NCBI RefSeq assembly: GCF_963676685.1
Contig: NC_092348.1
Span: forward strand, 58,404,001 to 58,468,000
Origin: Mytilus edulis
Taxonomy: Eukaryota
DNA: 64,000 bases
Direction of reading: 5' to 3'
The notes beneath the pieces were generated by a model. That model worked only from the letters and a program-made list of their open reading frames with translations, was not told the DNA's origin and made no database searches. Position numbers and translations under genes: made by a program. Below are positions 1 through 56,236 of the stretch, in pieces (positions within the stretch are counted from its first letter, which is position 1; each line of letters starts with the position of its first letter).

Positions 1-2928
1 CAAACGAATGGATAACAATGACCGCAAAGTGGAAAGGGATTAATATAAGTTGCAAAACTTGTTTCCCAAATCCACTATAAATATAAATATATTTAAACTA
101 ACAATGAAGGGACTTCTGTTTCACAACAATTCAACTGCCTCTAGATCAAGTATTATCAACGATGCATTTAAAAAGTAAAATCACAAGAATACTGAACTTC
201 GAGAAAAATTCAAAAATGAAAGTCCCTTATTAAATGACAAAATCAATTAAAAGCTCAAACACATCAAACAAATGGATAACAATTTAATGCAGTTTAATAA
301 TCAGTGGTGTGTGTTAATGTTTAAGTTTTTGATTACAGTTATTGATAGATGTATCTATTCTAAACTATACTACTTTTAAAATTAACGAACGCATGTTTTT
401 TGTTTCTGGTAAAGATAGACAAATCTAATGTTTTACATGTATTGATGCATTTATATAATAATATACTAGTAAGTGTACGTACTAACTTGCATAAACTTTT
501 TATAATTAAAGGGCCACTAGCTACGAGATATATGAAAGATATAAAACATGTTTTTTTTCCAGTCATAATTGAAAGTTAAAAATAATAATTACCTTTAAAC
601 AGCCAGTATGGTTTTGTCATAATAAGCGACGCAACAACGATGATGAGTTATTCACTTGCAAGTGAATAATTCGACATCATGGAATCATTATACAGGTGAC
701 CTTCAATTTAACCCCGTAAAGGTTAAAAAAAGAAGTGTGCATGAATTATGCGTGTTCAGTTATTAAAAGGAAAAGAATTTCAACATTGAAAGTGAAACAA
801 AGGTAAATAAATTGATTGTCCCATTCGATCCAAAAAACATTCGTTCTTATGGGTGCAATACCACCACTGACTTTCCCCTATAAGTCTTTGTTAAATTTGC
901 ACTTTTCAAAAAAAAATTCAGAATTTATCTTTGTTTCAATTAAAGAAATACTTGGCATCGAGTAAAATCGGTAAACAAGAGTTTGAGTTTGACAGTCAAT
1001 GTTCCTTTAAATATGTCGAGAATATCCCTACGAATTCTCTACTAACATACTTTCCATCATATTTCTTGATATATTTATGCAATCCGAGCTAAATTTTATG
1101 CAATTATGCTGCACTCGAATGAAAACTGCATGATTAGTATAAAATGGTTACTAGCATACAAATTTCGGGAAAAAAGGCATAAACTATCAAATTCAAGACC
1201 ACCGATTCTAGTATGACGGTCTTCTTTGCTTTGGATACAAAGCCATGTTCTAATTCTAATAAAACATGGGATGCACGTGATTGACGTGACAATTGAAATT
1301 GCAACGTCAGCAGAATTTTAAACAACGCCGGAGAACAAAATGGACATTCTAGTTGGTGTTGCTCGATAGGAAATTAAATAAAAACATTCATAAATTAAGT
1401 TAAAATGTTTCTGTTCTTTTTTTTAAATTGTTGATTTTCTATATCGTTTTAGGTTCATCAAATCAACATGGCGACATTTCGAGTGTGTATTATAGGTCCG
1501 CTTCGAGGTACAAAAGTTCATAATATTCCTATTAGAGGTTGCACTTTGTAAATACAGCTATTTCTCAAAACACGCCTCTTTTGGGGAGTAATTGAATATT
1601 CATAGAAAATTAATTTTGTTTACATACTGGTTCCCAGTTATGCTCTCTGTGTTCCATATCGCAGAGACAGAACTTGGGAATGTTACCAGTAAATAAACAC
1701 GTGCATATTGTTTACATTGAAATCTGTGGTTACCTTTCATTCGAGGTAGGGGTAGTTAAGAAAATTAGTGCAAGTTTAAACTCTGAGAAGTTCAGGGCAT
1801 ATAAACGTTGAATATATGCCGCACAGCCCTATATTTTGACCTTTGAAAAAAATTGTGGTGCATATGAACTTTCTATTCTAGGATAAGATTTTTTTCAAAA
1901 CTTCATAGTAAAAGTGGTAGTTTTAGCCGTAAAAGGAGTTCCTATGGGTAATTGCATTGTCAATATTTACAGAAATGCAACCTAGAATCGATAAAATTCT
2001 ATCATGCCATACTCTATGCTCATTAATTTTTATCATAGGTATGCATATATTTGTAAACATTTAATACCTTGCTATCACTTGGTATTAAGATATTGAAAAC
2101 TATAATGCCTACCCATGTTAAAATGAGCATAGAGAATGGCGTGAAAGAATTATTTCTGAATTTAACCTTAATTTTTGGTATTTGACTCCGAACATACTAA
2201 AACTTAAATCCAAACTAGAATTTTTTATAAAAGAATCAATTAACAATATATTGACTCGTTTCATTGTTTGATCATTTCGTGCATATTTTAGACTAGACGC
2301 TAACTAACAACCGTGATAACGTCAGAATACTGGTGATAAATAGACGGACTTTTCGTACGCATCTTGAGTTTTATGTAATTTTTTAAAAAATATAAATCAC
2401 CGGTAAACCAGTATATGATTGATTTTTCGTGGGCCAAATCAGACACGGATATGGTTTTATTCGTGGCTACCTTTTTCATGCACTTTTCAATGTTGGCAAT
2501 CTTTTCTTTTTGTAACTGAATACTTAAAACATGCGTTACCTATCTATTACTTAATTCAAGTTGAGGGTTATAGAACACGCATTCAAATGAGATTAAAGTA
2601 TTGACCAAATTGAACCAGATTGACTGATTAAAATATTGTTTTAATATTCCGCTTTAATTAATGTTTGAAAAAATAATCGTTTTTTATTTGTTTTGTCTAA
2701 ATTTTAGCTACTGTACCTTTCAATTATTAAAAATTTAAAGTATATATCAACTTCAAGAGATGTCTATTTTGGTAAGGGCTCAGTGTTTTGACGTAATTGC
2801 CTCGTTGTAATCAAGTTTACTTCTATTAAACTATTGTTAATGTAAATGGAACTTTTAAAAACTTGCATTTGAAAGCACTGCGTTTAACTATGTATGTATA
2901 TCCTTTCTATCTTTAGGATTGCGATATA

Positions 2929-3559
2929 TTACCTGGATGTCTTTTCATTGGTACCTGGCGAGGAAAGTTTCCGCTTGATATCGGAAACATGTTCAAAAAG
3001 ATTTGGAGGACAACTTGTTTTTCTCCTTCTGGCTTTACTTTTACTTTTCACTATTTCATTTAAATCTTCATCATCATTTGGGTCAACATGTGCACGTCTC
3101 AGTGGCACGTATTCCTGTGCATAATCAAAGTCTTTTTCAAGTCCTTCCTCAAAGCTTCTCGTTTTTACTGACGATTTCCCTATCGACTTAACAGTAGAAT
3201 TTGAATCATTTGAAGATTTTCTCGAGTCTGTTCTACTGAAAAATTTAATTAAATGTAAAGGAAAACTGACTTTTCTTTTCCTCGACTTTCTGGAATCTGT
3301 ATTAGATCTATCTCTCCCTGTAATTGCAACTCGGGCCAAAGTTCGTTTCGTAAGACTAGAATCAGATGACCATGACTTTCGTTTGGTCATTCTAGGAGCT
3401 CTCAAGTTGGAAGGCTTTTTCAAATCTGTATCTTCATCCATATTACTCATTGTCTCAGGGTTAATACCATTTGGTATTGGTTGGTAATCCATGTATTGTT
3501 TTTCTAGTGGCATATTGTATAAATGATCGTGAGAGTTTGTAGAAAAAACCCGTGGTCGT
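2929..3559 (-). CDS. BEST: Bestrophin last identified exon, Ser/Arg/Lys-rich tail
   Basis: Acceptor at 3560-3561, in frame with the 194-aa ORF 2929-3513. Confidence 0.75.
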
Positions 3560-6500
3560 CTACAATTAAAGAAAAGAAAATATATTCTCTGAAATCAACT
3601 ACATTCAGTCTTCTTTTTTTAAAATAAATTTCGTTCTAAGTATGTATTATACATTTCCAACTGTACGTTCAGTAAACAAACAAAATTGCGGTGACCTATA
3701 GTTGTTAATTTCTGTGTCATTTTGGTCTCTTGTGGAGAGTTGTCTCGTTGGCAATCATACCATATCTTCTTTTTTTATATTTGATCGTCTTTAAAGCTGA
3801 GTTTTACTTTGCGTATTGTCGTTTGTTTTATTTATTCTACATTAGTTAGATGTATAGGGGAGGATTGAGATCTCACAAGACATGTTTAACCACGCAGCAT
3901 TTTTTCGCCTGTCAGGTTCTGGCCGTTGTTCATCGTGTATGCTTTTTTTTCTCTTTAAGTTCATTTATTTGTTTTGGAGTTAAGTTTGACGTTCATTTTC
4001 ACTGAACTAGTATACATTTTTGTTTATGGGTCAGCTGGAGACTGCCTTCAACAATGAGGAAACCCCAAGTCTTACTTACGAATACGATGATCTACCGGTA
4101 ACAATGCTAAGTAACGATCCAGCAGCATTACTTCCAAAAGACATGTGTCTATTGGAGTCTTGGTCCATCACATCACCTAACACTATTCTTGATCCGCGAG
4201 TAGACGGGGACCTACATAAATAAAATAACCAATATGCAACAGTGCAAACAAGACAATAACAAAAGAATTTTTGTATTTACATTATATTTGTAAATTTGAT
4301 GCAACTTGTTTCGTTGTATGCATACTAAAATTAATGTGTGTATTTATTATTGTGAAATACTGATTAATGGTAAAAATGCGAGATGTGAAAATCACTTCTG
4401 AAATTATAAATGCGAATGCTATTGTAGCATTTTTCTCAAGAATATAAATATTGCAATAATTCACCAAATTCTGTGAATCAAAATGAAAGAATTTTAACTG
4501 TGCAAAGTAGCTAAGTAGCGAAATATGGCCTTGTGTGCATCAAAGTTCGGGAGGAATATAAAATAAAACATCTAATAAAGGCAACAGTGGTATACTCGTA
4601 AATCCATGGACAAAAAAACCAAAATCGGGGTAACAAACTAAAACCGAGGGAAACGCATTAAATAAGAGGAGAACAACGACACAACACTAAAAAGGTAACA
4701 CACACAGAAACGGACCAAGCATCAGACAAAATCCCACGAGAATAACAAATATAACATCAAAACCAAATACATTGTTTAACATAAAAAGTCTTATAGACAG
4801 TATAATTAAATATATGCCTATAGTAAACAAGCTCATCATATATACAAGGATTAAAATTTGAACGCCAGAATCAAAAAATTAAAAAGACCAAACAAATTAC
4901 AAATTACGAAGTTGAAAGTAATCGATTCCTAGGGTTAAATAATTGGAAAATTATTCCAGTGTGCTCGACACGTATTTGTTGAATATATCATGTAGTGTCA
5001 TAATTACTAATGTTACTACACACGAAATTACAAAATTTTGTGAAAAACTTTATGTTATATTACTCATTAAAAGGAAGAATTTTTTTTCCAGCAACATTTT
5101 ATTCCACATTCTACTAGAGATTATGATCTAATTGTATCGTTTGAATGTACAATTAAAAATTTCACAAGAACCTTTTTTTCAAGAAAAATTTCGATATAGG
5201 AACGTCGCATGAAAAAACCTAGAAATGAATCATTTATTTAAAAATTAAATTAAAACAGACGTGTCTTACGCCAGGTTGTATGTTGAACCAAGATACATTG
5301 GCCTTTTAGAACCAATTGACGCCTCTGTATATGGTACTTCGGTAAACATGTTTTCAAAATGTAAATCTTTAACAAGAGGAGGACATTGGTCACACATTTG
5401 GTCCACTAAAGCCATAACTACCTGTAAAAAGATTCAAAAGTTTGCGTACCATATGTAACAGAAAAAAATATGGAAAAATTAAACAACTACCAATGCAATT
5501 GATAATACCGTGATGATGGGTCTTATCAATTTACAGAACCTGTCTATTAGATTTATTGGTAATTATTCGCTTTCTTCATGAATATACATTAATCGGCGTT
5601 TAGCATGGATCGCACCAAATGTGATGTACTTATTCTGCCCGGTCGTAGTTGTAAAATAAAATAAATTGAGTATTTATACATTCTTAACAACAAAAAGGAC
5701 ACCTCTCTCAAGCAAGTTTAAAATTTTACCATGACGTTGTCAGACTATTTTCAAAAAAAATTTTGAATCTAACTTCCTTGCGTATCTTTTGTTTCTCTTT
5801 CGTAATGGTTTCTTGCTTTTATCAATACGTTGGTATACAATGGTTGTATAACATGCGTGACCGATGAAAAGCAAGTTGTTTATTTGATTTCTGCTCAGCA
5901 TACAAACCATATATTTCATTAAAAATTCAAGAAGATAATGATTACGTGATTAATCCATTATATAACAAAAAAGTGAGTCGACTTGGAGGAGGGTAGTTAT
6001 TTCAACTGTCACTGAAAAATGCAGAGAAAAAAAAATCCATCTAAACATAAAGTAATAATTACACCAACTATGCAATACAAAACGTCCATGTTTCTAAGCA
6101 ATACAAAACGTTAACTCAAAAGTTTACGGACAACTCTGAAAAGCAAAAATTTATTTGTTAGCCCTTAATAACTATAGTTCATAGATGAAATGAGGAATAG
6201 AAAGTAGGATTACATACAGCAGCATGTCTGTCAATCAACCAGTTTATATCAAAATCATCGTCATCTTCTCCAAACGGATTGATTAACTGTTCTGCTACCT
6301 CGAAAGAAAGAAAGAATAATCTACGAATAATACATATTCATTTTCGAGTGATTTTTATACCGAAGTTCGGTGGTTCTCGCCAGGCACTCCGACTTCCACC
6401 ACAAATAAAAACTGACCGTCACGAAATAGCACAAGTGTTGAAAGTGTCATAAAAAAACAATCAATCAATCAACATTATCAAGTGTGGTCAGATCTACTAC

Positions 6501-9500
6501 ACTTAACACTAAGCATGATACGTAATTCCATATTATGATTGGAAGATACATTTATTCTTAAAGATTATTAATTCAGATTGTAGTTTATTTTGAATAGTCT
6601 TATGTTGTGGCATTCCACAATAACTGCAGGAATTCTGATGTTGACCCAGGACATGTTCTTCCGCCTTTCTTCCTCAGACAATTTAAGGCGTCTTAACCTG
6701 AATCCGTGGCAGGTGTATTGATTGATATTTGAGTCGAGCGCTCGAAAAAAGTTTAATCCCTCCAATTTTAATGTGTCTCTACCTGATCATAAGCCTGAAG
6801 CCCATTGTTGTTGTTAGATAATAACAAAACTTCTGTCATATTTATTTTTCGTTTAATGTATATCAGGTCGCTAGAATTTTCTGTTTTGTTATCCGAAGTT
6901 TTTCTTTTTCTACAAGATATGCATTTTGAATTTTTAAAATCTGATTGGTTTCATAACGGAATATCACTTCAAAACAAATGCATAACTTTTTTTTTTATTT
7001 TGATTTCATAACAAGGTTATAGAAGTTGAATGCTTTTTATTTCGTTTATTAGCTTTCCCCCCCCCCCCCCCCCCCCCCCCTTTTTCATAAAAATTTACTG
7101 GTCAACGTTTTGCAAACAATTTAAAAAATCAATTTCAGTCTTTCTGTTAACTCGGCCTACGCATCACGATTCTAATGACGATAAGCAACACGACGAGTGC
7201 CACATGTGGAGCAGGATCTGCTTACCCTTCCGGAGCACCTGAGATCACACCCGGTTTTTGGCGAGGTTCGTGTTGCTTACTTATGTATTATTATTTGTCT
7301 GTTTATCTTTTAAATTTTAAGTATGGCGTTGTCAGTTTATTTTCAATATACGAGTTTGACTATCCCTCTGGTATCTTTCGTCGCTCTTTTGAGGGGGGAA
7401 GGACCTTTTTCGGGACGTCGGGATTGACCCTTTCGGGATCCGGGATTTCTTTTTTCGTATTTCGGGATGTCGGGATTTAATATTTTTCAGGATCAGGACC
7501 CCTCTCTCTCTTTTGTATAGAAATGAGGTTTTTCGAACTATTTGTTTTTAAACTATGAAATCAAGAAATACAAATGCAATTAAGCAATTGTGTACCTTAA
7601 AACTTATTTAATATATATTTGCATCAAAACTTACCTTGAGCCACCCCATATAGAAGAAAAATTGCAGCAATGTGAATATAGGAATATAAAAATCCATTCC
7701 ATATCCTTTGTAGTTCTTCGAAGGATCAAGGAACTGTTGACTTATTAATGTGGTTGCAAAAAATGTATACACGGCTAATGTTACAACCTAAAAGAGAGCA
7801 ATGATAAATACTAATTACTAAACAGCATACCATCGGAAAATTAATTCCAAAAGAAAATAGTTTATAAGTGTTCCATGAATAATACTTTGTACTTGTGTGT
7901 TTAGTTATTCAGTATACCGTTATGTAAGTGATTTCTGTACTAATTTTCCTTATTTTAACTATTCAAAAGATTAAAGTATTGGAATTAGTTATCAAAGGTA
8001 CCAGGATTATAATTTAATACGCCAGATGCGCGTTCGGTTACATAAGACTGATCAGTGACTCTCAGATCAAAATTGTTATAAAGCCAAATATGTACAAAGT
8101 TGAAAAGCATTGAGGACACAAAATTCAAAAACGTAGGTAGTTTCTGTTTTGTGTATGAACTTATTATAAAGGGTTGTTTTAAAGTGATCTTTTTTGTCCA
8201 TATGAAAGGCATCATTTATGAATGTACATGCTCTCCTTAACAACTTTACAACATCGAATATCTTTAAACATTTTATTCAAGACAATTTCCTTTGCTGAAT
8301 ATAAAAATATAAGTCAGAAGCAATATAAGATGGATAGTTCATTTCATACTTTAAAACAAAAGAAAACCCTTGTGAATAATGAAGGTTTTGAATGTCGGAC
8401 TAACGCTACCTGAGTAATATAGTCACCTGGGTGTATACTAAAGGTATTGTTATCCAGTCGTATACAAAACACTTCGAACAAGTATCCCTAATGTCTGCAA
8501 GAGGCTGAAACAGAAGTTTTACCATAAAAACATCTTAGATTACAATGGTAATATATCATTGCACGAGGTAACGAATTTAAGCCCCTACATAGACTGGACA
8601 TAGATATGGCTTCGTATATACACCACCAAACCAACGCCTTTTAATCACGGGTTTACATTCTTTGTCTGGAACAAGAGTTTTGCAAGGGCCCTTGTGTGTC
8701 TGGACAGCGAGGTTTATTCCCACACATTTATTTAATTAAATTCTCCGAATTCGAGTGTATAAATATATATGTAACAGGTATCAATTTTTCTTGAAAAAGT
8801 CTCAAACGAATGCTCCACGGCAAACATGTTTTGATCACACATCGTTGTCATTTTAATGGAATTTGACCCGACTCATATACAAGTGAGAGGTTCAGCACTT
8901 TAAAACCAGGTTTAATCTATCATTTTCTACTTAAGAATACGCCTGTACCAAGTCAGGAATAATGACAATTGTTATCCATTTTTTTTTGTGAGTTTAAGCT
9001 TTTGATTTTGCCATTTGATGAGACTTGCCATTTTAAATTTTCCACTAAGTTCAGTATTTTTGTGATTTTAATTTTTACTTATTTTGATTAACACAACAGC
9101 TAAAGAAACTCTTAATTTTTAAATTGCATTTACAATGTGCAAAATATTTCAACTGTACTTTCACCCCCAATATACAACAGCTAAAGAAACTCTTAATTTT
9201 TAAATTGCATTTACAATATGCAGGCCATGATATTTCAACAAACTTTCGCCCCCAATATTGTTTCAGTCATAATTCTTTCACGATATTATGTAAAAAAGCG
9301 ATAACGACTAGATTTTCAATAACTATTATGTTTATTTCAGTGAGGAACCATGCTTTTAAAAATTATCATACACTCAAATTTATTAAAGCAAACGCGAGTT
9401 ATTGTACAATTTCTATAGGAACGAGTGAATAATGTACCAGTCATAGTGATAACCATAGTATCATTTAATAGCAATTTTTCAGTTTATAAATGCAATTTGT

Positions 9501-12500
9501 AGTTTTCTTTAATTTTATAATTAATGAATCGCGATTGTGTTTTATTAAAGGGACATCACTCTAAACACAGAAACCACACCTAAATGGTCATTAACATGTA
9601 AAAGTCTGTTGATGACCGGTTTTCTTGTCCGTTTTTCTGTTAAGGACCGATGGATTGATTTTACTATAGAATAAAGAATGTCATGTGTTACCTTGTTATC
9701 CAATAAGAGAAGATAATTCTTGACCGATATGAATTAATAGTATTTTGAGTGGTAAGGATTATCATTACTTATATAATATACCTCTATTATCATTCTGAGA
9801 CCCCATTCAGTTTGTATAAGGCCTTCTTTTCTTGCTGTTACAAGTACACTATTAATCCACATGAAGGGAACCCAAAACTTGTTGTATCTGCAATCGATGT
9901 TTTCATACATCATTGCTTCCTCTTTAGTAATGAATCCTAAAGAGGAAGTAAAAGAATACAGATTGTTGAAGTATAAAGGATACTGTTAACCATTTTGGAG
10001 CAATTTAAATCTTCTTTTTTTTCGGTAAATATATATTTTCCATTGTTCTTAGAACTTATTGTTTACCGCTTATTTATTTTACCTCTTTATATTATCTTCT
10101 TTGTCTTCCTTTATCAATACTCACAGGGTTCGTGTTGCTTAGTCTTTCATTAGTTTTCTGTTAAATGAAAACTTTTACCAACATATTTTTTATCAAATAA
10201 AAGTCACCTTTATTTGATAAATGGCTTGAAAGAAACCATAATGTTCAATGAAATAGTCTACCCAACTATATTTGACTGGTATCTATTTGATTGTCCTTTG
10301 CTTATTGTTTAGTGGCAAATATTTCATGGCAACTAAGGCCGAAACAAAAATTCGCGAATGATTTTGCAAAATACTTCACTACAAAATTGATATATAGTTA
10401 TCAAAGGTACCCGGATTATAATTTAGTACGCCAGACGCGCGTTTCGTCTACATATGACATAAGACTTATCAGTGACGCTCATATCAAAATATTTATAAAG
10501 CCAAACAAGTATTAAGTTGAAGAGCATAATAATATGAAAGTATTTAAAAAAAAAAACTGTAAAATGATCAGAGTCTGTTAGCGTATCAATTTGGTAGCAT
10601 GTGCCATTTAACGTGATCTAATATTGGAACCTGCTATACAAAGATCTAAACATTTTCAATTGTCCAGTGCTAATTATGATTAGGAGTTATCTCTCTGTCA
10701 CCACGTGGAGATGCCCAGAAATAACATATTACTCGTTAGTCAATTACAAGATTGTTCAAAAACTATGTTTTATTCATTAACAAACTGATTTATTCATTTA
10801 TGAATGATATTATTGTACTGCACTAATCAATACAACCCCACGTGCACGATTAGAATAATTAAATATATCTTAATGTATTTCACCATGCACGAACTTCACC
10901 CATTCGTCAATATGAATAACAGCCATGTTATATTCCATGTGATTGTGTGAGATGTATAAATACGCAAACACGTCACGTCGATATTAAACATAAATATTCA
11001 ATCAATGTAAAGTACCATCTAAAATATTTTGTCTTTTGGAAGAAAAAAACTATATGGTAGTTTTTAAGACACCTATTTATTACCTGCTTCCACGATGTGA
11101 TCCAATGTAGGAAATCTTTTCATGACAGCTACACTTATTGAACGAGCTATTAGTATAATTCCAAACATCAGATATCTTGCAACTGTTCTTCTGAGTACCC
11201 GCTTCCTGTCTGTTTGTCCGGGAAGATAACAACACAACATGAATACGGTCCTATAATTGTTTTTCAAAAACTGTTACACATAATTCTTGACCACTTAATA
11301 CTAGTAAAGAGTCTTAAAATATCAAATTAGACGAGAATGAACCAAAGCGGTTTTCCGGATTTTCTCTTTCGTAGTAATCAGTTATATGTATATAAAAAAA
11401 GAAGATGTGGTATGATTGCCAATGAGACAGCTCTCCACAAGAGACCAAAATGACACAGCAATTAACAACTATAGGTCACCGTACGGCCTTCAACAATGAG
11501 CAAAGCCCATACCGCATAGTCAGCTATGAAAGACCCCGAAATGACAACGTAAAACAATTCAAACGAGAAAATTAACGGCCTTATTTATTTTTATAAAATG
11601 AACGAAAAACAAATATGTAACACATAAACAAACGACAACCACTGAATTACAGGCTCCTCAGTCCTCAGTGACTTGGGACAGGCACATAAATACATTGTGT
11701 GGCGGGGTTAAACATGTTAGCGGGATCTCAACCCTCCCCTAACCTGAGACAGTGGTATAACAGTACAACATAAGAACGAACTTAAAAATCAGTTGAAAAA
11801 GCTTAACTCATCAGATGGACAAAAATACAAGTGGACGTGGATGGGTACTTGTACATCCCAACAACAAAAAGATACTAGGAACATATTTGAGAGTATTCGC
11901 AGTTAACTGACAGATAGTTAAAGCCACTAACAACTAATTGAAAAAATCATGCATCTAAAACTAAATTATCAATCCGTACACATCCAATAGATTTAGTGTA
12001 AAGACGCCATAAACAGTCAGAGAAAAACATGACTTTGTGCAATGCCAAGATACAGGTATCGACATCTTGTAGATCCATGAATGTGTATATGTTACAGTAT
12101 ATAACATACTAGTAATATTTGGTTTGCATTTAATTTACTGATAACATAATCAATATTTATACCAATAAAAACAATATGCAATGCTTTTATTACAGTGTTA
12201 AATTGGTAAATTTTTGAAATAAGTTAATTTAAAGTTTACCAGGATCATTTTTGAATTTCCGGGCACGGTTAACAACATTTCCGTAGAAATGATGAAGTGC
12301 TATTCCGTTTGAAATAAGTTTTCTACAGGTACAACCAAAATTCTAAACCAAATCTTTATATCTATGAAAAAATTTAGTAAAGGTTTTAAGTGATATATGG
12401 TAACGATATCCCTGGTTTAATAATTTACCAGTAATACATAGATTACGTTCTTTAAAATAAAAAAACGTCACAACATACACGGGCATAGCGAACGAGCTAT

Positions 12501-15500
12501 ATAAACACCGTAAGATGGTAACAAAGGAACACCGCCATCTAAAATTTGAAAATTAACAATAGGGAACGAAAAATTGTTCCTTTTGTCGTAAATTTTAGTA
12601 TAGAGTTTCCCGTTTAAAACCGAAATATCTAAATCTAGCAAAGGACAGTAATTACCGTTTAAATTTGATTTATTTAAAGTTAGTTCCTTGGGGTCAATTT
12701 CAGCAGTATGTTGATTATTTAACGAAAAATATCATCAAGATTTATAACGGTAAGTGTTGTTGAATTTATCAATTAAATGCAATTTCTACGGTTCTTTACT
12801 GAGTTTAGTCATAAACTATACATATTGAAATGTTAATTCAAGTGTCTGTAACAAGTTTTCTCCAGGTACATCAAAACTTCGAAACAATTAATCTGTAATT
12901 ATGAATTATTGAACTCAGGTTTTTTTAAGAAATTTGTGGAAACGATATCCCGACTAGTTTACCATTGGTTTAGAGTACGTTACCACAGGCAGAGCCTTAT
13001 CGAACGAGTAAAGCATTCTTATCGGCATTCCAATGGGAACAAACTGTGCCCCTCTACTCGCCGACTTGTTTCTTTATTATTATGAGGCTGACTTCATGCA
13101 GGAACTTCTTAGGAAGAAAGATAAGAAGTTAGCAATATCCTTTAACTCTACTTTCCGCTATATAGATGATGTTCTTTCACTAAACAATTCAAAATTTGGT
13201 GACTATGTGGAACGCATCTATCCAATCGAACTAGAGATAAAGGATACTACAGATACAGTTAAGTCGGCTTCATATCTTGACTTACATCTAGAAATTGACA
13301 ATGAGGGTCGGTTGAAAACAAAACTTTACGACAAAAGAGATGATTTCAGCTTTCCAATTGTGAACTTTCCATTTCTAAGTAGCAACATTCCAGCAGCACC
13401 TGCATACGGGGTATATATCTCCCAATTGATACGATATTCCCGTGCTTGCATTTCCTATCATGATTTTCTTGATAGAGGTTTGCTGCTCACAAGGAAGCTA
13501 TTAAACCAAGAGTTCCAAATGGTGAAGTTGAAATCATCCCTTCGTAAATTTTACGGACGCCATCACGAGTTGGTTGACCGTTATGGAATAACCGTTTCAC
13601 AAATGATATCGGATATGTTCCTTACGTCGTAACTACAATCCCCTTCCCTTTCATGAATATGACCTACCGAATTAGACTATTTACCGGATTTGTAATCACT
13701 TAAGCAACACGACGGGTGCCACATGTGGAGCAGGATCTGCTTACCCTTCCGGAGCACCTGAGATCACCCCTAGTTTTTGGTGGGGTTCGTGTTGTTTATT
13801 CTTTAGTTTTCTATGTTGTGTCGTGTGTACTATTGTTTTTCTGTTTGTCTTTTTTATTTTTAGCCATGGCGTTGTCAGTTTGTTTTAGATTTATGAGTTT
13901 GACTGTCCCTTTGGTATCTTTCGTCCCTCTTTTGGATATATAAACATCGTAAGATTGGACCAAAGGAATATCACCATCCCAAAGCAAAATTAACCATAGA
14001 AAACAAAAAAGTCCCTTTTATTGGAAATTGTTTATGTATATATAGCCTTTCATTAAAAATAAAATACAGGAACATTTCTTATAAAGAGGCGCAATTGGTG
14101 CCAATGGGAATACATATAACCTCTAGATACAGTTTTAAGCAGAAACATACCGTGAAATTGGTGTTGTCAAGGAGTAAACAGTACAACATTAATTTAATTC
14201 TCATTACATTTCAAATCAGTTTATTTAGCATATATTCATTTCTTAATTTGGCGTATAAATATTCGCATACGCTTTAATCAGTAATTCGGTTTTCACACAT
14301 ATATATCCAGATTTCGCGCCTTTTCTCTTGTCGAGAAAAAATTACTGATCAGATCGACACGTATATTTTGCATTCATGATATTTAATTGCAGTTATCTCT
14401 TTTTCTGATATAACATTTTTATATATGTAGATTTCCTACCATTTTTCGGAGATCCAGAGACCATGATTTACATGACCAGAGTTATTAAACTGATCAGTAC
14501 AATTTCCCATCCCAAATGGGTTTTTTTTATTTTATGTATTATTAAGACAATTTTTATGTTCGTATGAGTATAGCGAAGAAGAACATAAGAATATGTTATC
14601 AACACTAATACCCATACATCCTATCGATACTCTAGTTTTGGAATTTCACTGACTGATTATGACGTCTTTATACTTAATTCATTGGAGGTATTATGGCTGA
14701 CAGGTAAACTGATTTTTATAGTTTGTTCTTATGTTGTACTGTCACACCACTGTCCTAGGTTAGGGGTGGATGTGTGTCCCGCTAACATAATTAAGCAACA
14801 TGTATGTGTCTGTCCCAAGTCAGGAGCCTGTAATTCAGTGGTTGTCGTTTGTTGATAATATGTGTTGCATATTTATTTTTCGTACATTTTTTGTTCTTTA
14901 ATAGGCCGTTAGTTTTCTCGTTTGAATTGTTCTACATTTTTCATTTCGGGGCCTTTAATAGCCGACTATGCGGTATGGGCTTTGCTCATTGTTGAAGGTT
15001 GTACGGTGACCTATAGTTAATTTTTGTGTCATTTGGTCTCTTATTGATAGTTGTCTCCTTGGCAATTATACCATAAATTCTTTTTATATTTAGTGTTGGA
15101 AGAAATTGTTTCTGAACACAGGCAAGGCCGAAGTTTTTTTCTTTTGAAATGCTTCTCATTTTGTTGTGCGTAAAACTTTCAAATATATAGCTTACTAATT
15201 TGTTTTGTCCTTTAGGGTTTAAGGATAGCTTTATCATTAACAATCAAACCACATCTCGTTAAATATGTATAATGATGCTCAACCATCCCCGATATAAGTT
15301 TTTTAACTATTGTGTCATCAAATTGCATTTATATATTTATCACTTGCAAAATATCCGATATGTTCTTTTTTTTAAGAAAGCAGTAAAAAATAACTTATGT
15401 AATAGAATTACCTGTCTGGCCAAGGAAAATTCTGGAATTGTCTCCACCATCTTGAAACTACCATGGAAACATAAAATCCGAGAACAAATGACAGAGGAAT

Positions 15501-20389: not shown

Positions 20390-21100
20390 TAGATAAAGGC
20401 AACAGTAGTATACCGCTGTTCAAAACTCATAAATCCATGGACAAAAAACAAAATCGGGGTAACAAACTAAAACTGAGGAAAACGCATTAAATATAAGAGA
20501 ACAACGACACAACATTAAAATGTAACACAAACAGAAACGGACTAAGTATTAGACAAAAACCTATGAGAATAAAAAATATAACATCAAAACCAAATACATG
20601 AATTTGGGATAGATAAGTACCGTGACACGTCTTATAGTAATGTGAATTCACACTAAAAAAATAAAAGAAAACAAACGACACATCGGAAACACAACGTGAA
20701 AATGTAACACACACAGTAACGAACTATAATATAACAATGGCCATATTCCTGACTTGGTACAGGACATTTTTAAAGTAAAAAATGGTGGGTTGAACCTGGT
20801 TTTGTGGCATGCCAAACCTCTCTCTTCTATGGCCGTGTGAAATATAACATTAAAATGACAACACAACATTACAGGACTACAGTATAAATAAATAGGAGAA
20901 CACAATTAACAAACAAACACACGAATAATAGCTAACAAAAGGCAACAAGTTTAAAACTTTAATACGCCAGAAGTGCATTTTGTCCACACAAGACTTACTC
21001 GTGCCGCCCAGATATAAAAATTTGAAAGCCGAAACAAGTATAAAGTTGAACAGCAGCATCGAGGACCAAAAGTTCAAAAAGGTTGTGCCAAAAACAGCCA
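20390..21100 (-). mobile_element. Non-coding retro-like element carrying a twister (20739-20834) and a degenerate hammerhead (20964-21007)
   Basis: Its left part is repeated at about 4574-4770; its right part matches the hammerhead-containing repeat at 7986-8132 and 10394-10526. Confidence 0.7.
20739..20834 (-). ncRNA. Twister ribozyme variant (ACC/GGU pseudoknot)
   Basis: GGCCAUA...GA-GGU...C^AA-CCC-AC-(CAUUUUU/AAAAAUG)-CCUG-UACCAAGU-CAGG-AA-UAUGGCC. Confidence 0.72.
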
Positions 21101-29187: not shown

Positions 29188-29631
29188 TCAACCTAGGTCT
29201 AATACGTGAGTCATATAAGATATATAACAAATAGCTAATCTTAAAATTTCAATTTTTGATAATTTTTTATCTGGAGGTAGTGTTGGTAATAATTTTCGGA
29301 GCTCAGAAAATGCCACATTGAAAGCCTCTACACGAATTCTTTCCCTAGTAGCATGAGCCGTTCTGTATTTTTGTGTTGCCCTTCTCCTGCGTCTGCGCTC
29401 TTCACGGCTTAAACCTTGTTCATGAGAACCGTCGCCATTTTGATCATGACTATCGTGTCCGTCAGTACAACTCGAATTCTTCATGAAACAGAAATCGTCC
29501 ATGCTTTTCTCTTCGGAACTAGGTGTAATACCACAGTCTGATTCGTTGAAATCTGATTTCGGTGATAAGTTGTCAAAATTATGTTCTCTGATATATCCAT
29601 ATTCAAACATTTCTCTTTGGTAGTTCTTCAT
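29188..29631 (-). CDS. NHLH1: NHLH/HEN/NSCL-family neural bHLH transcription factor (HLH4C-like)
   Basis: [60 protein letters not shown] matches the NHLH bHLH. A splice acceptor (TTTTCAG) lies just upstream of the ATG, so an upstream exon is likely. Confidence 0.93.
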
Positions 29632-30633
29632 ATTTTCTGAAAATAAACAACAATTTTGTAATAAACTCTGCTCATCAAAATTTATGATAAAAAGAACTCC
29701 ATAGTATCTACATTTGTTTCCCTAGTTTTAGATTTTTCCAAAATGGTACACCTAAAATGACTTTTGTACAATAGTCGACAAAGGTACTGATACATATATC
29801 TGAAGTCAAATTTATGATCAAATTTGATAAATATGAAAAACTGTTATATCATCAAAACTAACACACCCTTTTGCAAACCAAACACAACAAGTTGGATAGG
29901 AAAAAAATATAGTAAATTTATGGAAACATTGGGATCAAAACTAGTATGCACAAATTGATGACAAAATCTATGCCCAATTTCAAAGATGAGAATTCTTTAT
30001 TCAAATACCTGTGAAGTCTGTGAAGGCATTCAAAAGTTAGATCAGACCTTGCATACAATATATATGTTACAAATTTTTAGTTTTATTATTTTAAATAGCA
30101 CTGACCATCGCGCTGTAGCGTAGGCAATCGCACTTTAGCTTGACCATTGCGTTTTTTTGTCCCAATCGCGTTTAGAGTCGTATAAAATATTTGTTTTACT
30201 CTTTCGGAACGAACAAATGGATATTTTACTTCCACAAGGTCGGAAACCCATAAATCATGATAGTACAATCAGCCTAATAGACAGTACTTCGGTCCTGGCA
30301 GGATTTTGTCAGAAAATTTCAAGGAATAAATAATCGATCAATTGTACAAAAAAAAATAAGGTTGAAAGTTGATTTTGGACGGTTTTAGCTCGTAAATATG
30401 TAAAATTGAGAAAGGAAATGGTGAATATGTCAAAGCGACAACCACCCGACCATAGAGCAAACAACAGCCGAAGGCAACCAATGGGTCTTCAATGTAGCGA
30501 GAATTCCCGCACCCGTAGGTGTCCTTCAGCTGGCCCCTAAAATATGCATAAAAGTACAGTGATAATGGACGTCATACTAAACTCCGAATTATACACAAGA
30601 AACTAAAATTTAAAATCATACAAGACTAACAAA

Positions 30634-30724
30634 GGCCAGAGGCTCCTGACTTGGGACAGGCGCAAAATTGCGGCGGGGTTAAACATGTTTATGAGATCTC
30701 AACCCTCCCCCTATACCTCTAGCC
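30634..30724 (-). ncRNA. Twister ribozyme, P5-type permutation, in PLE 3' region
   Basis: GGGG-GA-GGG...U^AA-CCCC-GC-C-(GCAA/UUGC)-G-CCUG-UCCCAAGU-CAGG-A, closed by a 10-bp P5 GGCUAGAGGU/GCCUCUGGCC. Confidence 0.82.
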
Positions 30725-30908
30725 AATGTAGAAAAGTAAAAGAATAACAATACGCACATTAAAATTCAGTTCAAGAGAAGTCCGAGTCTGATGTCAAAAG
30801 ATGTAACAAAAGAAAATAAACAAAATGACAATAATACATAAATAACAACAGACTACTAGCAGTTAACTGACATGCCAGCTCCAGACCTCAATTAAACTGA
30901 TTGAAAGA

Positions 30909-30997
30909 TTATGTCTTCATCATATGAATATCAGGTACAATCCCTCCCGTTAGGGGTTTAGTATCATACTATCATAAAATATATGAGAAGAACATAA
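30909..30997 (-). promoter_or_regulatory. SECIS element (type 2) in PLE 3' UTR
   Basis: AUGA core, 12 nt, AAA, CCC/GGG apical mini-stem, UGAU; helix II (A)GUAUGAU/AUUGUAC(C); helix I UUAUGU-CUUC-UCAUAU / AUAUGA-GAAG-ACAUAA. Confidence 0.8.
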
Positions 30998-31039
30998 CCC
31001 GTGTCATGCCAACAACTGTTTTTTTAGAAATAAATGTGT

Positions 31040-31807
31040 TTAGTTCCGATGCAAAGACCCTATCAGTGAATCAATGTTAAAGCCAAAATATGCAATCTTT
31101 AATGACCTGACAACAGTATCGTAACTATATCCCCTTTTAATAAGTCTATTTAAAGGTTTTGTTAGTTTCTGAGGAGAATACTGACATTTTTGTGCTTTAT
31201 AAAGAATATTTCCATAAAATTTTGGATGTGAAATACCTGAACGTATAAGATGTCTGCATGTTGAGTTATATTTACGAATTATTTCCTTATACCGGTGATA
31301 AAATTTAGTAAATGTTTTGACCAGTTTGTGATATCGAAAACCCTGGTGTAATAATTTTTCAATAATACATAAATTTCTCTCGCTAAAATCTAATACATTG
31401 TTACATACACGAGCGAATCGTACAAGTTGAGATATATAAACACCATAAGATGGTGACAAGGGAACGTCACCATCTAAAAATGGATAATTAACAATAGGAA
31501 ATGAAAAATCATCTCTTTTATCATAAATTTTTGTATTAAGCTTCCCGTTTATGATATAGATATCAAGATCGAGGAAAGGGCAGTGGTCATTGTTATCATT
31601 AGCTTTATTTAAAGTAAGTTCTACAGGATAAATTTCTTTAGTATACATACTGAAGTCGTCATTATTTAGAGCCAATATATCATCCAAATATCTAAAAGTA
31701 TTGTTAAATTTTTGTATCAAATGTTGTTTTGATGGGTCTTTGCTAATTGTAGTCATAAATTGTAACTCATAACAATACAAAAACAGGTCCGCAATAAGTG
31801 GTAGCAT
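31040..31807 (-). pseudogene. PLE reverse transcriptase fragment (open, 5'-truncated)
   Basis: 255-aa ORF with RT motifs 4-7 and thumb; the ATG comes from the flanking junction. Confidence 0.85.
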
Positions 31808-46008: not shown

Positions 46009-46244
46009 TAAAATTGAGAAAGGAAATGGGGAATGTGTCAAAGCGACAACAACCCGACCATAGAGCAGACAACGGCCGAAGGGTCTTCAATGTAGCGAGA
46101 AACTCCCGCATCCGGAGGCGGTCTTCAGCTGGCCCCTTAAAGAATATTTATACTAGTTCAGTGATAATGGACGTCATACAAGACTAACAAAGGCCAGAGA
46201 CTCCTGACTTTGAAAGGCGCAAAATTGCGGCGGGGTTAAACATG
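46009..46244 (-). mobile_element. Short 3'-end copy of PLE family A with the 3' half of the twister
   Basis: Matches 30401-30687 with an internal deletion. Confidence 0.85.
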
Positions 46245-56192: not shown

Positions 56193-56236
56193 ACGTCACT
56201 GATGAGTCTTATGTAGACGAAACGCGCGTCTGGCGT
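56193..56236 (+). ncRNA. Minimal type I hammerhead ribozyme (retrozyme/PLE type), intact core
   Basis: ACGUCA-CUGAUGA-GUCU(UAUGU)AGAC-GAAA-CGCGCG-UC^-UGGCGU; palindromic stem III. Confidence 0.92.

Follow-up and report, generated by a model that had tools for sequence, protein, structure and literature searches.

Canonical Penelope-like elements (PLEs) carry hammerhead ribozymes in their pseudo-LTRs (Cervera and de la Pena 2014; Lunse et al. 2017, cited in PMC6765202). Naiads, which rank with the most common repeats in bivalves and in many other invertebrates, had been singled out as ribozyme-less PLEs; they were reported to be without canonical hammerheads, and twister was not mentioned (Craig et al., PMC8557442). 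A repeat on the minus strand of the window, the 64,000-nucleotide stretch of Mytilus edulis DNA analysed here, raises the question of whether such an element may have a self-cleaving RNA of another class in the hammerhead slot. From the letters alone, the original prediction had read this repeat as a selenium-dependent PLE in which the RT stop is followed by a SECIS element, a type-P5 twister, and a structured terminus. We followed each of these modules through the host genome and through related elements in metagenome contigs.

The repeat is a truncated copy of a recently amplified Naiad

The window repeat derives from a Naiad that was amplified recently, a PLE whose GIY-YIG endonuclease is N-terminal. 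BLAST comparison of the window copy with tandem arrays showed that 31806-30401 (minus strand) is a 5'-truncated Naiad copy (family A). In three 10-kb stretches of the same genome, head-to-tail copies with a period of 4030/4031 bp were 99-100% identical to it, and Naiad tandems are spread across the 1.37-Gb host genome, which has at least 14 chromosome-size contigs. About sixty further loci held copies of all truncation lengths, with scattered starts and with nearly all ends at unit position 4030, which equals window position 30401 and is the common 3' end of insertions. The window copy keeps the last 254 codons of the frame (31043-31806, minus strand; unit positions ~2629-3388) and the entire 639-nt 3' UTR. 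Both the ORF list and the full-unit frame placed the true stop, TAA, at 31042-31040 (minus strand), where the end of the RT frame had been expected, and this stop codon was TAA in 31 of 31 sampled copies.

One natural full unit (L052:4125-8161) contains one long frame of ~1000 codons that closes in TAA and includes DKA, CxC, and GIY-YIG motifs; DKA and CxC are Naiad marks according to Craig et al. 2021 (PMC8557442). A homolog search yielded >25,000 clusters, the full-length ones with an N-terminal GIY-YIG. Alignment of 22 full-length homologs revealed the order GIY-YIG, CxC linker, and RT with DKA, and the Pfam GIY-YIG domain was located upstream of the RT. The unit frame, the homolog alignment, and the Pfam domain all confirmed the N-terminal endonuclease foreseen for full-length copies. 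Further features of Naiads were partial tandems (pseudo-LTRs), strong 5' truncation, a unit within 3.4-4.4 kb, and the lack of a canonical hammerhead: Rfam returned no hammerhead match in the element or in 15 related loci.

Four in-frame UGA codons and a SECIS element

All four in-frame stops within the long frame of the full unit are TGA. Each of them aligns to a column in which every aligned relative among the 22 full-length ones has Cys. One is the second Cys of the upstream CxxC finger and another the Cys that precedes GIY-YIG; the remaining two are the first Cys of CCHH and the one located eight residues past DKA. At these four sites, TGA was kept in 6/6, 6/6, 6/6, and 16/16 sampled copies, respectively. 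This arrangement points to a single frame that would be read through four UGA codons as selenocysteine, requiring a SECIS after the true stop.

A SECIS element was located at 30909-30997 (minus strand), 55 nt past the true stop and at the position originally predicted. Rfam SECIS_1 matched its core at 30985-30921 (minus strand) with 30.9 bits (E=0.0011 in a 1.6-kb search), which is below the cut-off of 35; the alignment displayed the AUGA/GA quartet and the apical A's, and the folding z-score was -2.7. The same slot was filled in seven further lineages from metagenome contigs, with sub-threshold SECIS_1 scores of 26.6-31.9 bits. With all four stops being TGA at invariant Cys, their retention in sampled copies, and a SECIS behind the frame, the selenium-dependent PLE and the in-frame UGA at conserved Cys of full-length copies were both upheld at the level of sequence.

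Selenoprotein Naiads were described in two clams and two spiders by Craig et al. 2021 (PMC8557442). They share with the mussel element UGA codons at three sites (the Cys ahead of GIY-YIG, the first CCHH Cys, and the Cys of DKA+8), as well as a SECIS directly after the stop, whereas the mussel element has a fourth UGA at the second Cys of the upstream CxxC finger. That paper describes no ribozyme; in the mussel element a twister fold is present, as set out below. In marine-metagenome contigs (L084-L163), the codon eight residues after DKA was TGA in 29 of 52 foreign loci and TGT/TGC in 23 of 52, and selenocysteine-coding Naiads seem to exceed the four published families by far. At this codon, some close relatives (80%, 68-61% identity) encode Cys, which either reverted or never changed.

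A type-P5 twister fold follows the SECIS

A type-P5 twister fold was found at 30634-30724 (minus strand), ~320 nt past the stop. When the region was parsed by hand against the published twister module table, all modules were present in the P5-open order: a P5 arm (30716-30724), a short L2 strand, the P2 3' strand (30708-30711), a five-base L1 3' strand (30703-30707), 21 nt, the N|AA site, the P2 5' strand (30675-30678), two L2 pseudoknot bases, the P3 hairpin (30661-30672), P4 (30657-30660/30645-30648) with an eight-base L4 (30649-30656), and the other P5 arm (30634-30643), all on the minus strand. The catalytic and conserved loop residues of that table were all present. The N|AA site consists of U30681, A30680 (A+1, the general acid), and A30679 (A+2); both A's are kept in all lineages, and position -1 is U or C across lineages. 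The L1 3' strand (30707-30703) opens with the general-base G, followed by the purines of the 3-bp pseudoknot with L4. The 2-bp pseudoknot between L2 and the L4 end comprises G.U plus C-G in the window copy, and the helices P2 and P4 enclose the conserved L4 loop.

Twister-P5 (RF02684, clan CL00120) was the best Rfam family at this site and aligned over the full model length at 30711-30645 (minus strand), in the same register as the hand parse (23.4 bits, E=0.0042, 201 nt searched). The P3 insert and the unpaired P1 cost bits, and the score lies under the gathering cut-off of 37.6, which is an operational threshold. Rfam gave no twister match at gathering level on the window, nor at E-value level on 1.6 kb and 60 kb of loci. 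The Infernal check with Rfam models that had been proposed was therefore passed in one respect, in that SECIS_1 and Twister-P5 were both matched at the right sites, but not in the other, as the scores stayed under the curated cut-offs. A strict motif pattern had 11,461 matches in the genome compared with 0 for the reversed pattern, which excludes chance. The minimum-free-energy fold favours an alternative helix that buries the cleavage site. With the Rfam match, the model and pair counts of the following section, and the energies of the P5 arms, the predicted twister, including its outer P5 helix, was recovered at 30724-30634 (minus strand), in the place where canonical PLEs have a hammerhead.

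The remainder of the element is a 3' terminal region that extends from 30633 to the insertion end at 30401 (minus strand), the shared end at unit position 4030. The sequence of its last ~130 nt is conserved among A-like subfamilies. The structured terminus predicted at ~30500-30401 thus stood as a conserved terminus but not as a structure, the consensus fold being weak (-6.8 kcal/mol) and without covariation gain; the single-sequence folding z-score was -2.4.

The twister fold shows compensatory changes across Naiad lineages

An alignment of RT relatives was scanned against metagenome contigs, which gave 80 loci whose RT identity ranged over 36-100%. In these loci, a strict descriptor picked out 20 motifs, all on the RT strand and most of them 307-384 nt past the estimated frame end, compared with 0 when reversed and ~0.2 per shuffle. 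A covariance model (R1) was built from eight foreign Naiad lineages only (50-58% RT identity); it contains nested helices only, and the pseudoknots are not in the model. On the whole 64-kb window, R1 matched the family A copy at 30645-30711 (minus strand) with 41.7 bits and E=2.6e-7, so that the covariance-model support looked for was obtained, and the family B copy (11669-11739, minus strand) with 29.1 bits. In the 80 foreign loci there were 35 matches at E<=0.1, every one on the RT strand, and 31 marine-metagenome Naiad contigs had the twister fold, again on the RT strand, at RT identities as low as 40%.

In the R1 alignment of 32 distinct sequences, 89.6% of cells were paired, compared with 68.8% for shuffled partners and 28-46% for slid ones, and 0 of 500 shuffles reached the observed value. 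Fourteen of the 19 pairs change on both sides, both pseudoknots among them, and every helix and both pseudoknots show compensatory changes. P2 and P4 were paired in 84% and 97%, both with two-sided changes. The 3-bp pseudoknot was paired in 83% across the 32 rows (types G-C, A-U, U-A, and U.G), and the 2-bp pseudoknot in 92% (types C-G, G.U, A-U, and U.G); since the pseudoknots are absent from R1, their pairing could not have been fitted to the model. An anchor-based tally on 15 lineages agreed with the pair counts. That the twister fold is kept by selection in Naiads at large is well supported by these comparisons. It was found in Sec-coding and Cys-coding Naiad lineages alike, and the ribozyme is therefore not confined to the selenium-dependent branch. 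Genome-internal variation at the first P2 position resembled neutral copy decay, showed no compensation, and was excluded as evidence.

Related folds were also observed in other positions. A second repeat family with a related twister fold is present in the window at 8883-8957 (plus strand) and 20748-20824 (minus strand) and in a metagenome contig (L132:1293-1369). R1 scored 45.1 and 39.1 bits in this family, L4 and L1 differ in a compensating manner, and the base at position -1 is U at 8883 but C at 20748 and in L132. In a metagenome contig, a nearly identical copy precedes a Cys-coding Naiad RT (43% identity) on the RT strand, and these seemingly non-coding repeats are probably the tails or pseudo-LTRs of another Naiad lineage. 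Two foreign contigs have a twister both before and after the frame, L108 (19-90 and 5647-5718, spacing 5628 nt) and L092 (3-81 and 4184-4262, spacing 4181 nt), and in L114 (685-763) a twister is found ~400 nt before the inferred start. The pseudo-LTR with an upstream ribozyme thus recurs outside this genome.

Two palindromes occupy the place of P1

A search for a conventional P1 beside the cleavage site gave none. A palindrome scan revealed that the 21 nt in its place (30681-30701, minus strand) are filled by two adjacent perfect 10-nt palindromes (30692-30701 and 30681-30690). P1 is dispensable in the literature, and its absence is therefore no bar to membership of the twister class. Among the lineages, 20-23 nt separate the L1 3' strand from the cut, the palindromes measure 8-10 nt, and the second extends up to the base that precedes the cut. 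At least one perfect 8-nt palindrome was present in 14 of 15 lineages, compared with 7.6% of shuffles, and two were present in ten lineages. The palindrome sequences vary between lineages, so that it is the self-complementarity itself that is conserved; two near-identical contigs differ at two central bases of the first box, and the palindrome is preserved.

Palindromes with a two-base centre cannot form hairpins, and in cofolding calculations homodimers were favoured by 5-17 kcal/mol. Taken with the analogy to the dimeric Penelope hammerheads, the palindromes suggest that two copies would have to pair before efficient cutting.

Predicted cleavage site and copy boundaries

The Rfam and R1 alignments and the published cleavage-site rule place the predicted scissile bond, and hence the putative self-cleavage, between U30681 and A30680 (minus strand). 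In the bulk assay reported by McKinley et al. 2024 (PMC11662667), ~94% of natural twister candidates were active, and P1 defects, any base at -1, and G.U in the 2-bp pseudoknot were tolerated; the residues that proved essential in that assay are all present in the mussel twister. Because of this high proportion, the tolerated features, and the presence of the essential residues, the predicted twister is expected to be active in vitro with a likelihood of roughly two in three.

The boundaries of RNAs and copies were compared with this site. In one RNA-seq run with the same organism label, ~6% of which was read, there was no excess of molecule ends at 30680/30681, the depth had no dip across the cut site, and both strands were covered about equally. 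In such a read-out, a resealed or circular product would look like uncut RNA. Genomic copies end 280 nt downstream of the predicted cut. With a genome pattern needing unrelated sequence before +1, homology was seen to stop precisely at the cut in 10 of >11,000 copies, most of which look like internal deletions. Because copies neither start nor end at the cut, a 5'-end definition of the R2/Perere-3 kind is ruled out. A twister that sets the ends of inserted copies, as HDV-like ribozymes or the Schistosoma twister variants do, was considered and is contradicted by the copy boundaries. The proposal that the transcript ends are processed by the twister was not supported by the same observations, namely copy ends 280 nt past the cut, essentially no starts at it, and no pile-up of RNA ends.

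Eight RNA reads with five start points contained a 34-nt tandem duplication over the cleavage site and P3 (30652-30685, minus strand), which is probably a variant copy.

A proposed role in tandem transcripts and a reading without catalysis

We consider it likely that the mussel sequence is the tail of a selenoprotein Naiad with a selected, P5-open, twister-class fold that would cleave itself in place of the pseudo-LTR hammerhead of PLEs. The twister may then take over the job of that hammerhead in other PLEs, the cutting of tandem or read-through transcripts, a role assigned by analogy. Both in this genome and in foreign contigs, full units are preceded by partial copies that include the twister. 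A read-through transcript would be cut ~660 nt ahead of the start codon and a second time past the SECIS. In all eight lineages with a detected SECIS, this element is 5' of the predicted cut, so that cleavage would never part it from the frame and it would stay on the ORF-bearing piece. The cut RNA might be resealed into circles, which would leave no trace in ordinary RNA-seq; this last step is speculation.

A more specific version is conceivable, though we hold it to be doubtful. The Naiad clade may have swapped the Penelope hammerhead for a dimer-dependent twister that needs the encounter of two copies to fire, as would occur within tandem transcripts or between paired RNAs, freeing a unit-length RNA that could be resealed into circles for rolling-circle reverse transcription. 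If true, a dimer-dependent twister would explain the head-to-tail arrays, the finding that no copy ends at the cut, and the uncut bulk RNA.

The lack of RNA ends and of genomic boundaries at the site is also consistent with a fold that is selected without catalysis. The compact pseudoknotted handle and its dimerisation boxes would then be recognised by the RT or another protein, or would pair RNAs like a retroviral dimer-initiation site, and cleavage in vivo would be negligible. The conserved GC-rich palindromes, the favourable homodimer energies, and the alternative fold that competes with the active one are in line with such a scaffold. However, conservation across lineages falls exactly on the catalytic residues of twister (A+1, A+2, and the first G of the L1 3' strand), which a scaffold does not need, and the high proportion of active molecules among bulk-tested natural candidates also argues for catalysis. 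We judge this scaffold unlikely and prefer the self-cleaving twister.

Family B and the unity of the cassette

A decayed copy of the diverged family B, whose RT protein is 56-63% identical, was identified by tblastn and blastn at 11391-12817 (minus strand). In this copy, the SECIS quartet is mutated and P4 contains an 11-nt duplication. A better family B copy (L081) scored 18.9 bits with SECIS_1 and 20.4 bits with Twister-P5, in the same order. The original prediction had family B carry the same modules in the same order; the order holds, also in L081, but the window copy is decayed. When the 3' UTRs of families A and B were compared, the sole alignable block was the one holding the twister. 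The P5 arms of A and B pair with -22 and -15 kcal/mol within each family and poorly across families.

These comparisons bear on whether the cassette is a unit. The number of motifs in the genome is far above the number of full-length elements, a related motif also occurs in non-coding repeats of the window, and a third window copy (~14745-14840) is a separate B-type fragment beside an unrelated RT piece, all of which would fit a mosaic cassette in which the twister is part of a short non-autonomous element of its own that became inserted in, or joined to, the Naiad tail. Such an origin is very improbable: every full-length tandem unit has the twister at the same position, 5' truncation with a common 3' end explains the motif excess, and in the foreign lineages the spacing to the ORF end is constant and the strand is always that of the RT. 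Chance resemblance, or a dead and neutrally drifting relic, might be read from the Rfam scores under gathering thresholds, yet the likelihood of either is next to nil given the pairing that no shuffle matched, the compensatory changes in most pairs, the twister block as the only 3' UTR part alignable between A and B at their level of RT identity, and the R1 matches in the window and the foreign loci.

Relation to known ribozymes of retroelements

The predicted self-cleaving twister resembles the PLE hammerheads (cited in PMC6765202) in being a small self-cleaving motif in the 3' part or pseudo-LTR of a partially tandem PLE, and in having a stunted, self-complementary helix beside the cut, by which the hammerheads act as dimers. 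It differs in ribozyme class, being a predicted P5-open twister known from its sequence. Twister variants have been described at the 5' end of Perere-3 (RTE) in Schistosoma mansoni (Liu et al. 2021, PMC8501958), and a 2020 review notes truncated twisters in RTE elements, again at the 5' end. The Perere-3 and mussel sequences both have a twister core with a weak or absent P1 within a retrotransposon, and their modules match almost letter for letter. In Perere-3, the cut defines the 5' end and the target-site duplication supplies P1 (PMC8501958), whereas in the mussel Naiad the motif is P5-permuted and sits 280 nt short of the 3' end, and the cut is not where copies begin.

Bivalves are among the taxa with predicted twisters in McKinley et al. 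2024 (PMC11662667), where 1129 species were added; no context is given for them. In their text, the bulk twister surveys (Roth 2014; McKinley et al. 2024, PMC11662667) link twister to no Naiad, SECIS, or pseudo-LTR. A full-text search, with subscription papers and supplements outside its scope, found no paper that places a twister in a Naiad. Selenoprotein Naiads, PLE hammerheads, and RTE twisters are already published kinds; to our knowledge, a twister in the Naiad tail, with a palindromic P1 substitute and a wide distribution, is undescribed.

A conserved twister in the hammerhead slot would show self-cleavage, whatever the fold, to be a requirement of the whole retroelement class. It would also give twister a second and far larger natural role, its only function tested so far being that in the Schistosoma Perere-3, and would provide a natural system in which to test dimer gating of a twister. 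From the constant order of stop, SECIS, and twister, it can be seen how a single 3' UTR may accommodate both a recoding signal and a cleavage site.

Other features of the window

Two older A-like tail fragments (~73-75% identity) are located at 3797-4040 (plus strand) and 46009-46244 (minus strand). One of them is without L4, and the other starts just six bases before the cleavage site, beside a TA-rich stretch. An RT fragment of a third Naiad family lies at 13033-13632 (plus strand) and 13633-13930; its tail gave no twister match by pattern or by R1, and a reversed RT piece is situated between it and the twister-like motif of the separate B-type fragment.

A Type I hammerhead at 56193-56236 (plus strand) scored 36.1 bits, above the Rfam cut-off of 34. 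In the contig L080, Type I hammerheads at 2246-2289 and 1898-1941 scored 32.5 and 26.0 bits, below that cut-off, and the two copies are 350 nt apart, as in retrozyme-like tandems. Finally, an ORF of 147 codons at 29188-29631 (minus strand) has a basic helix-loop-helix domain at its end, which we take to resemble the NHLH/HEN type. It is likely a host exon, ~770 nt from the end of the element.
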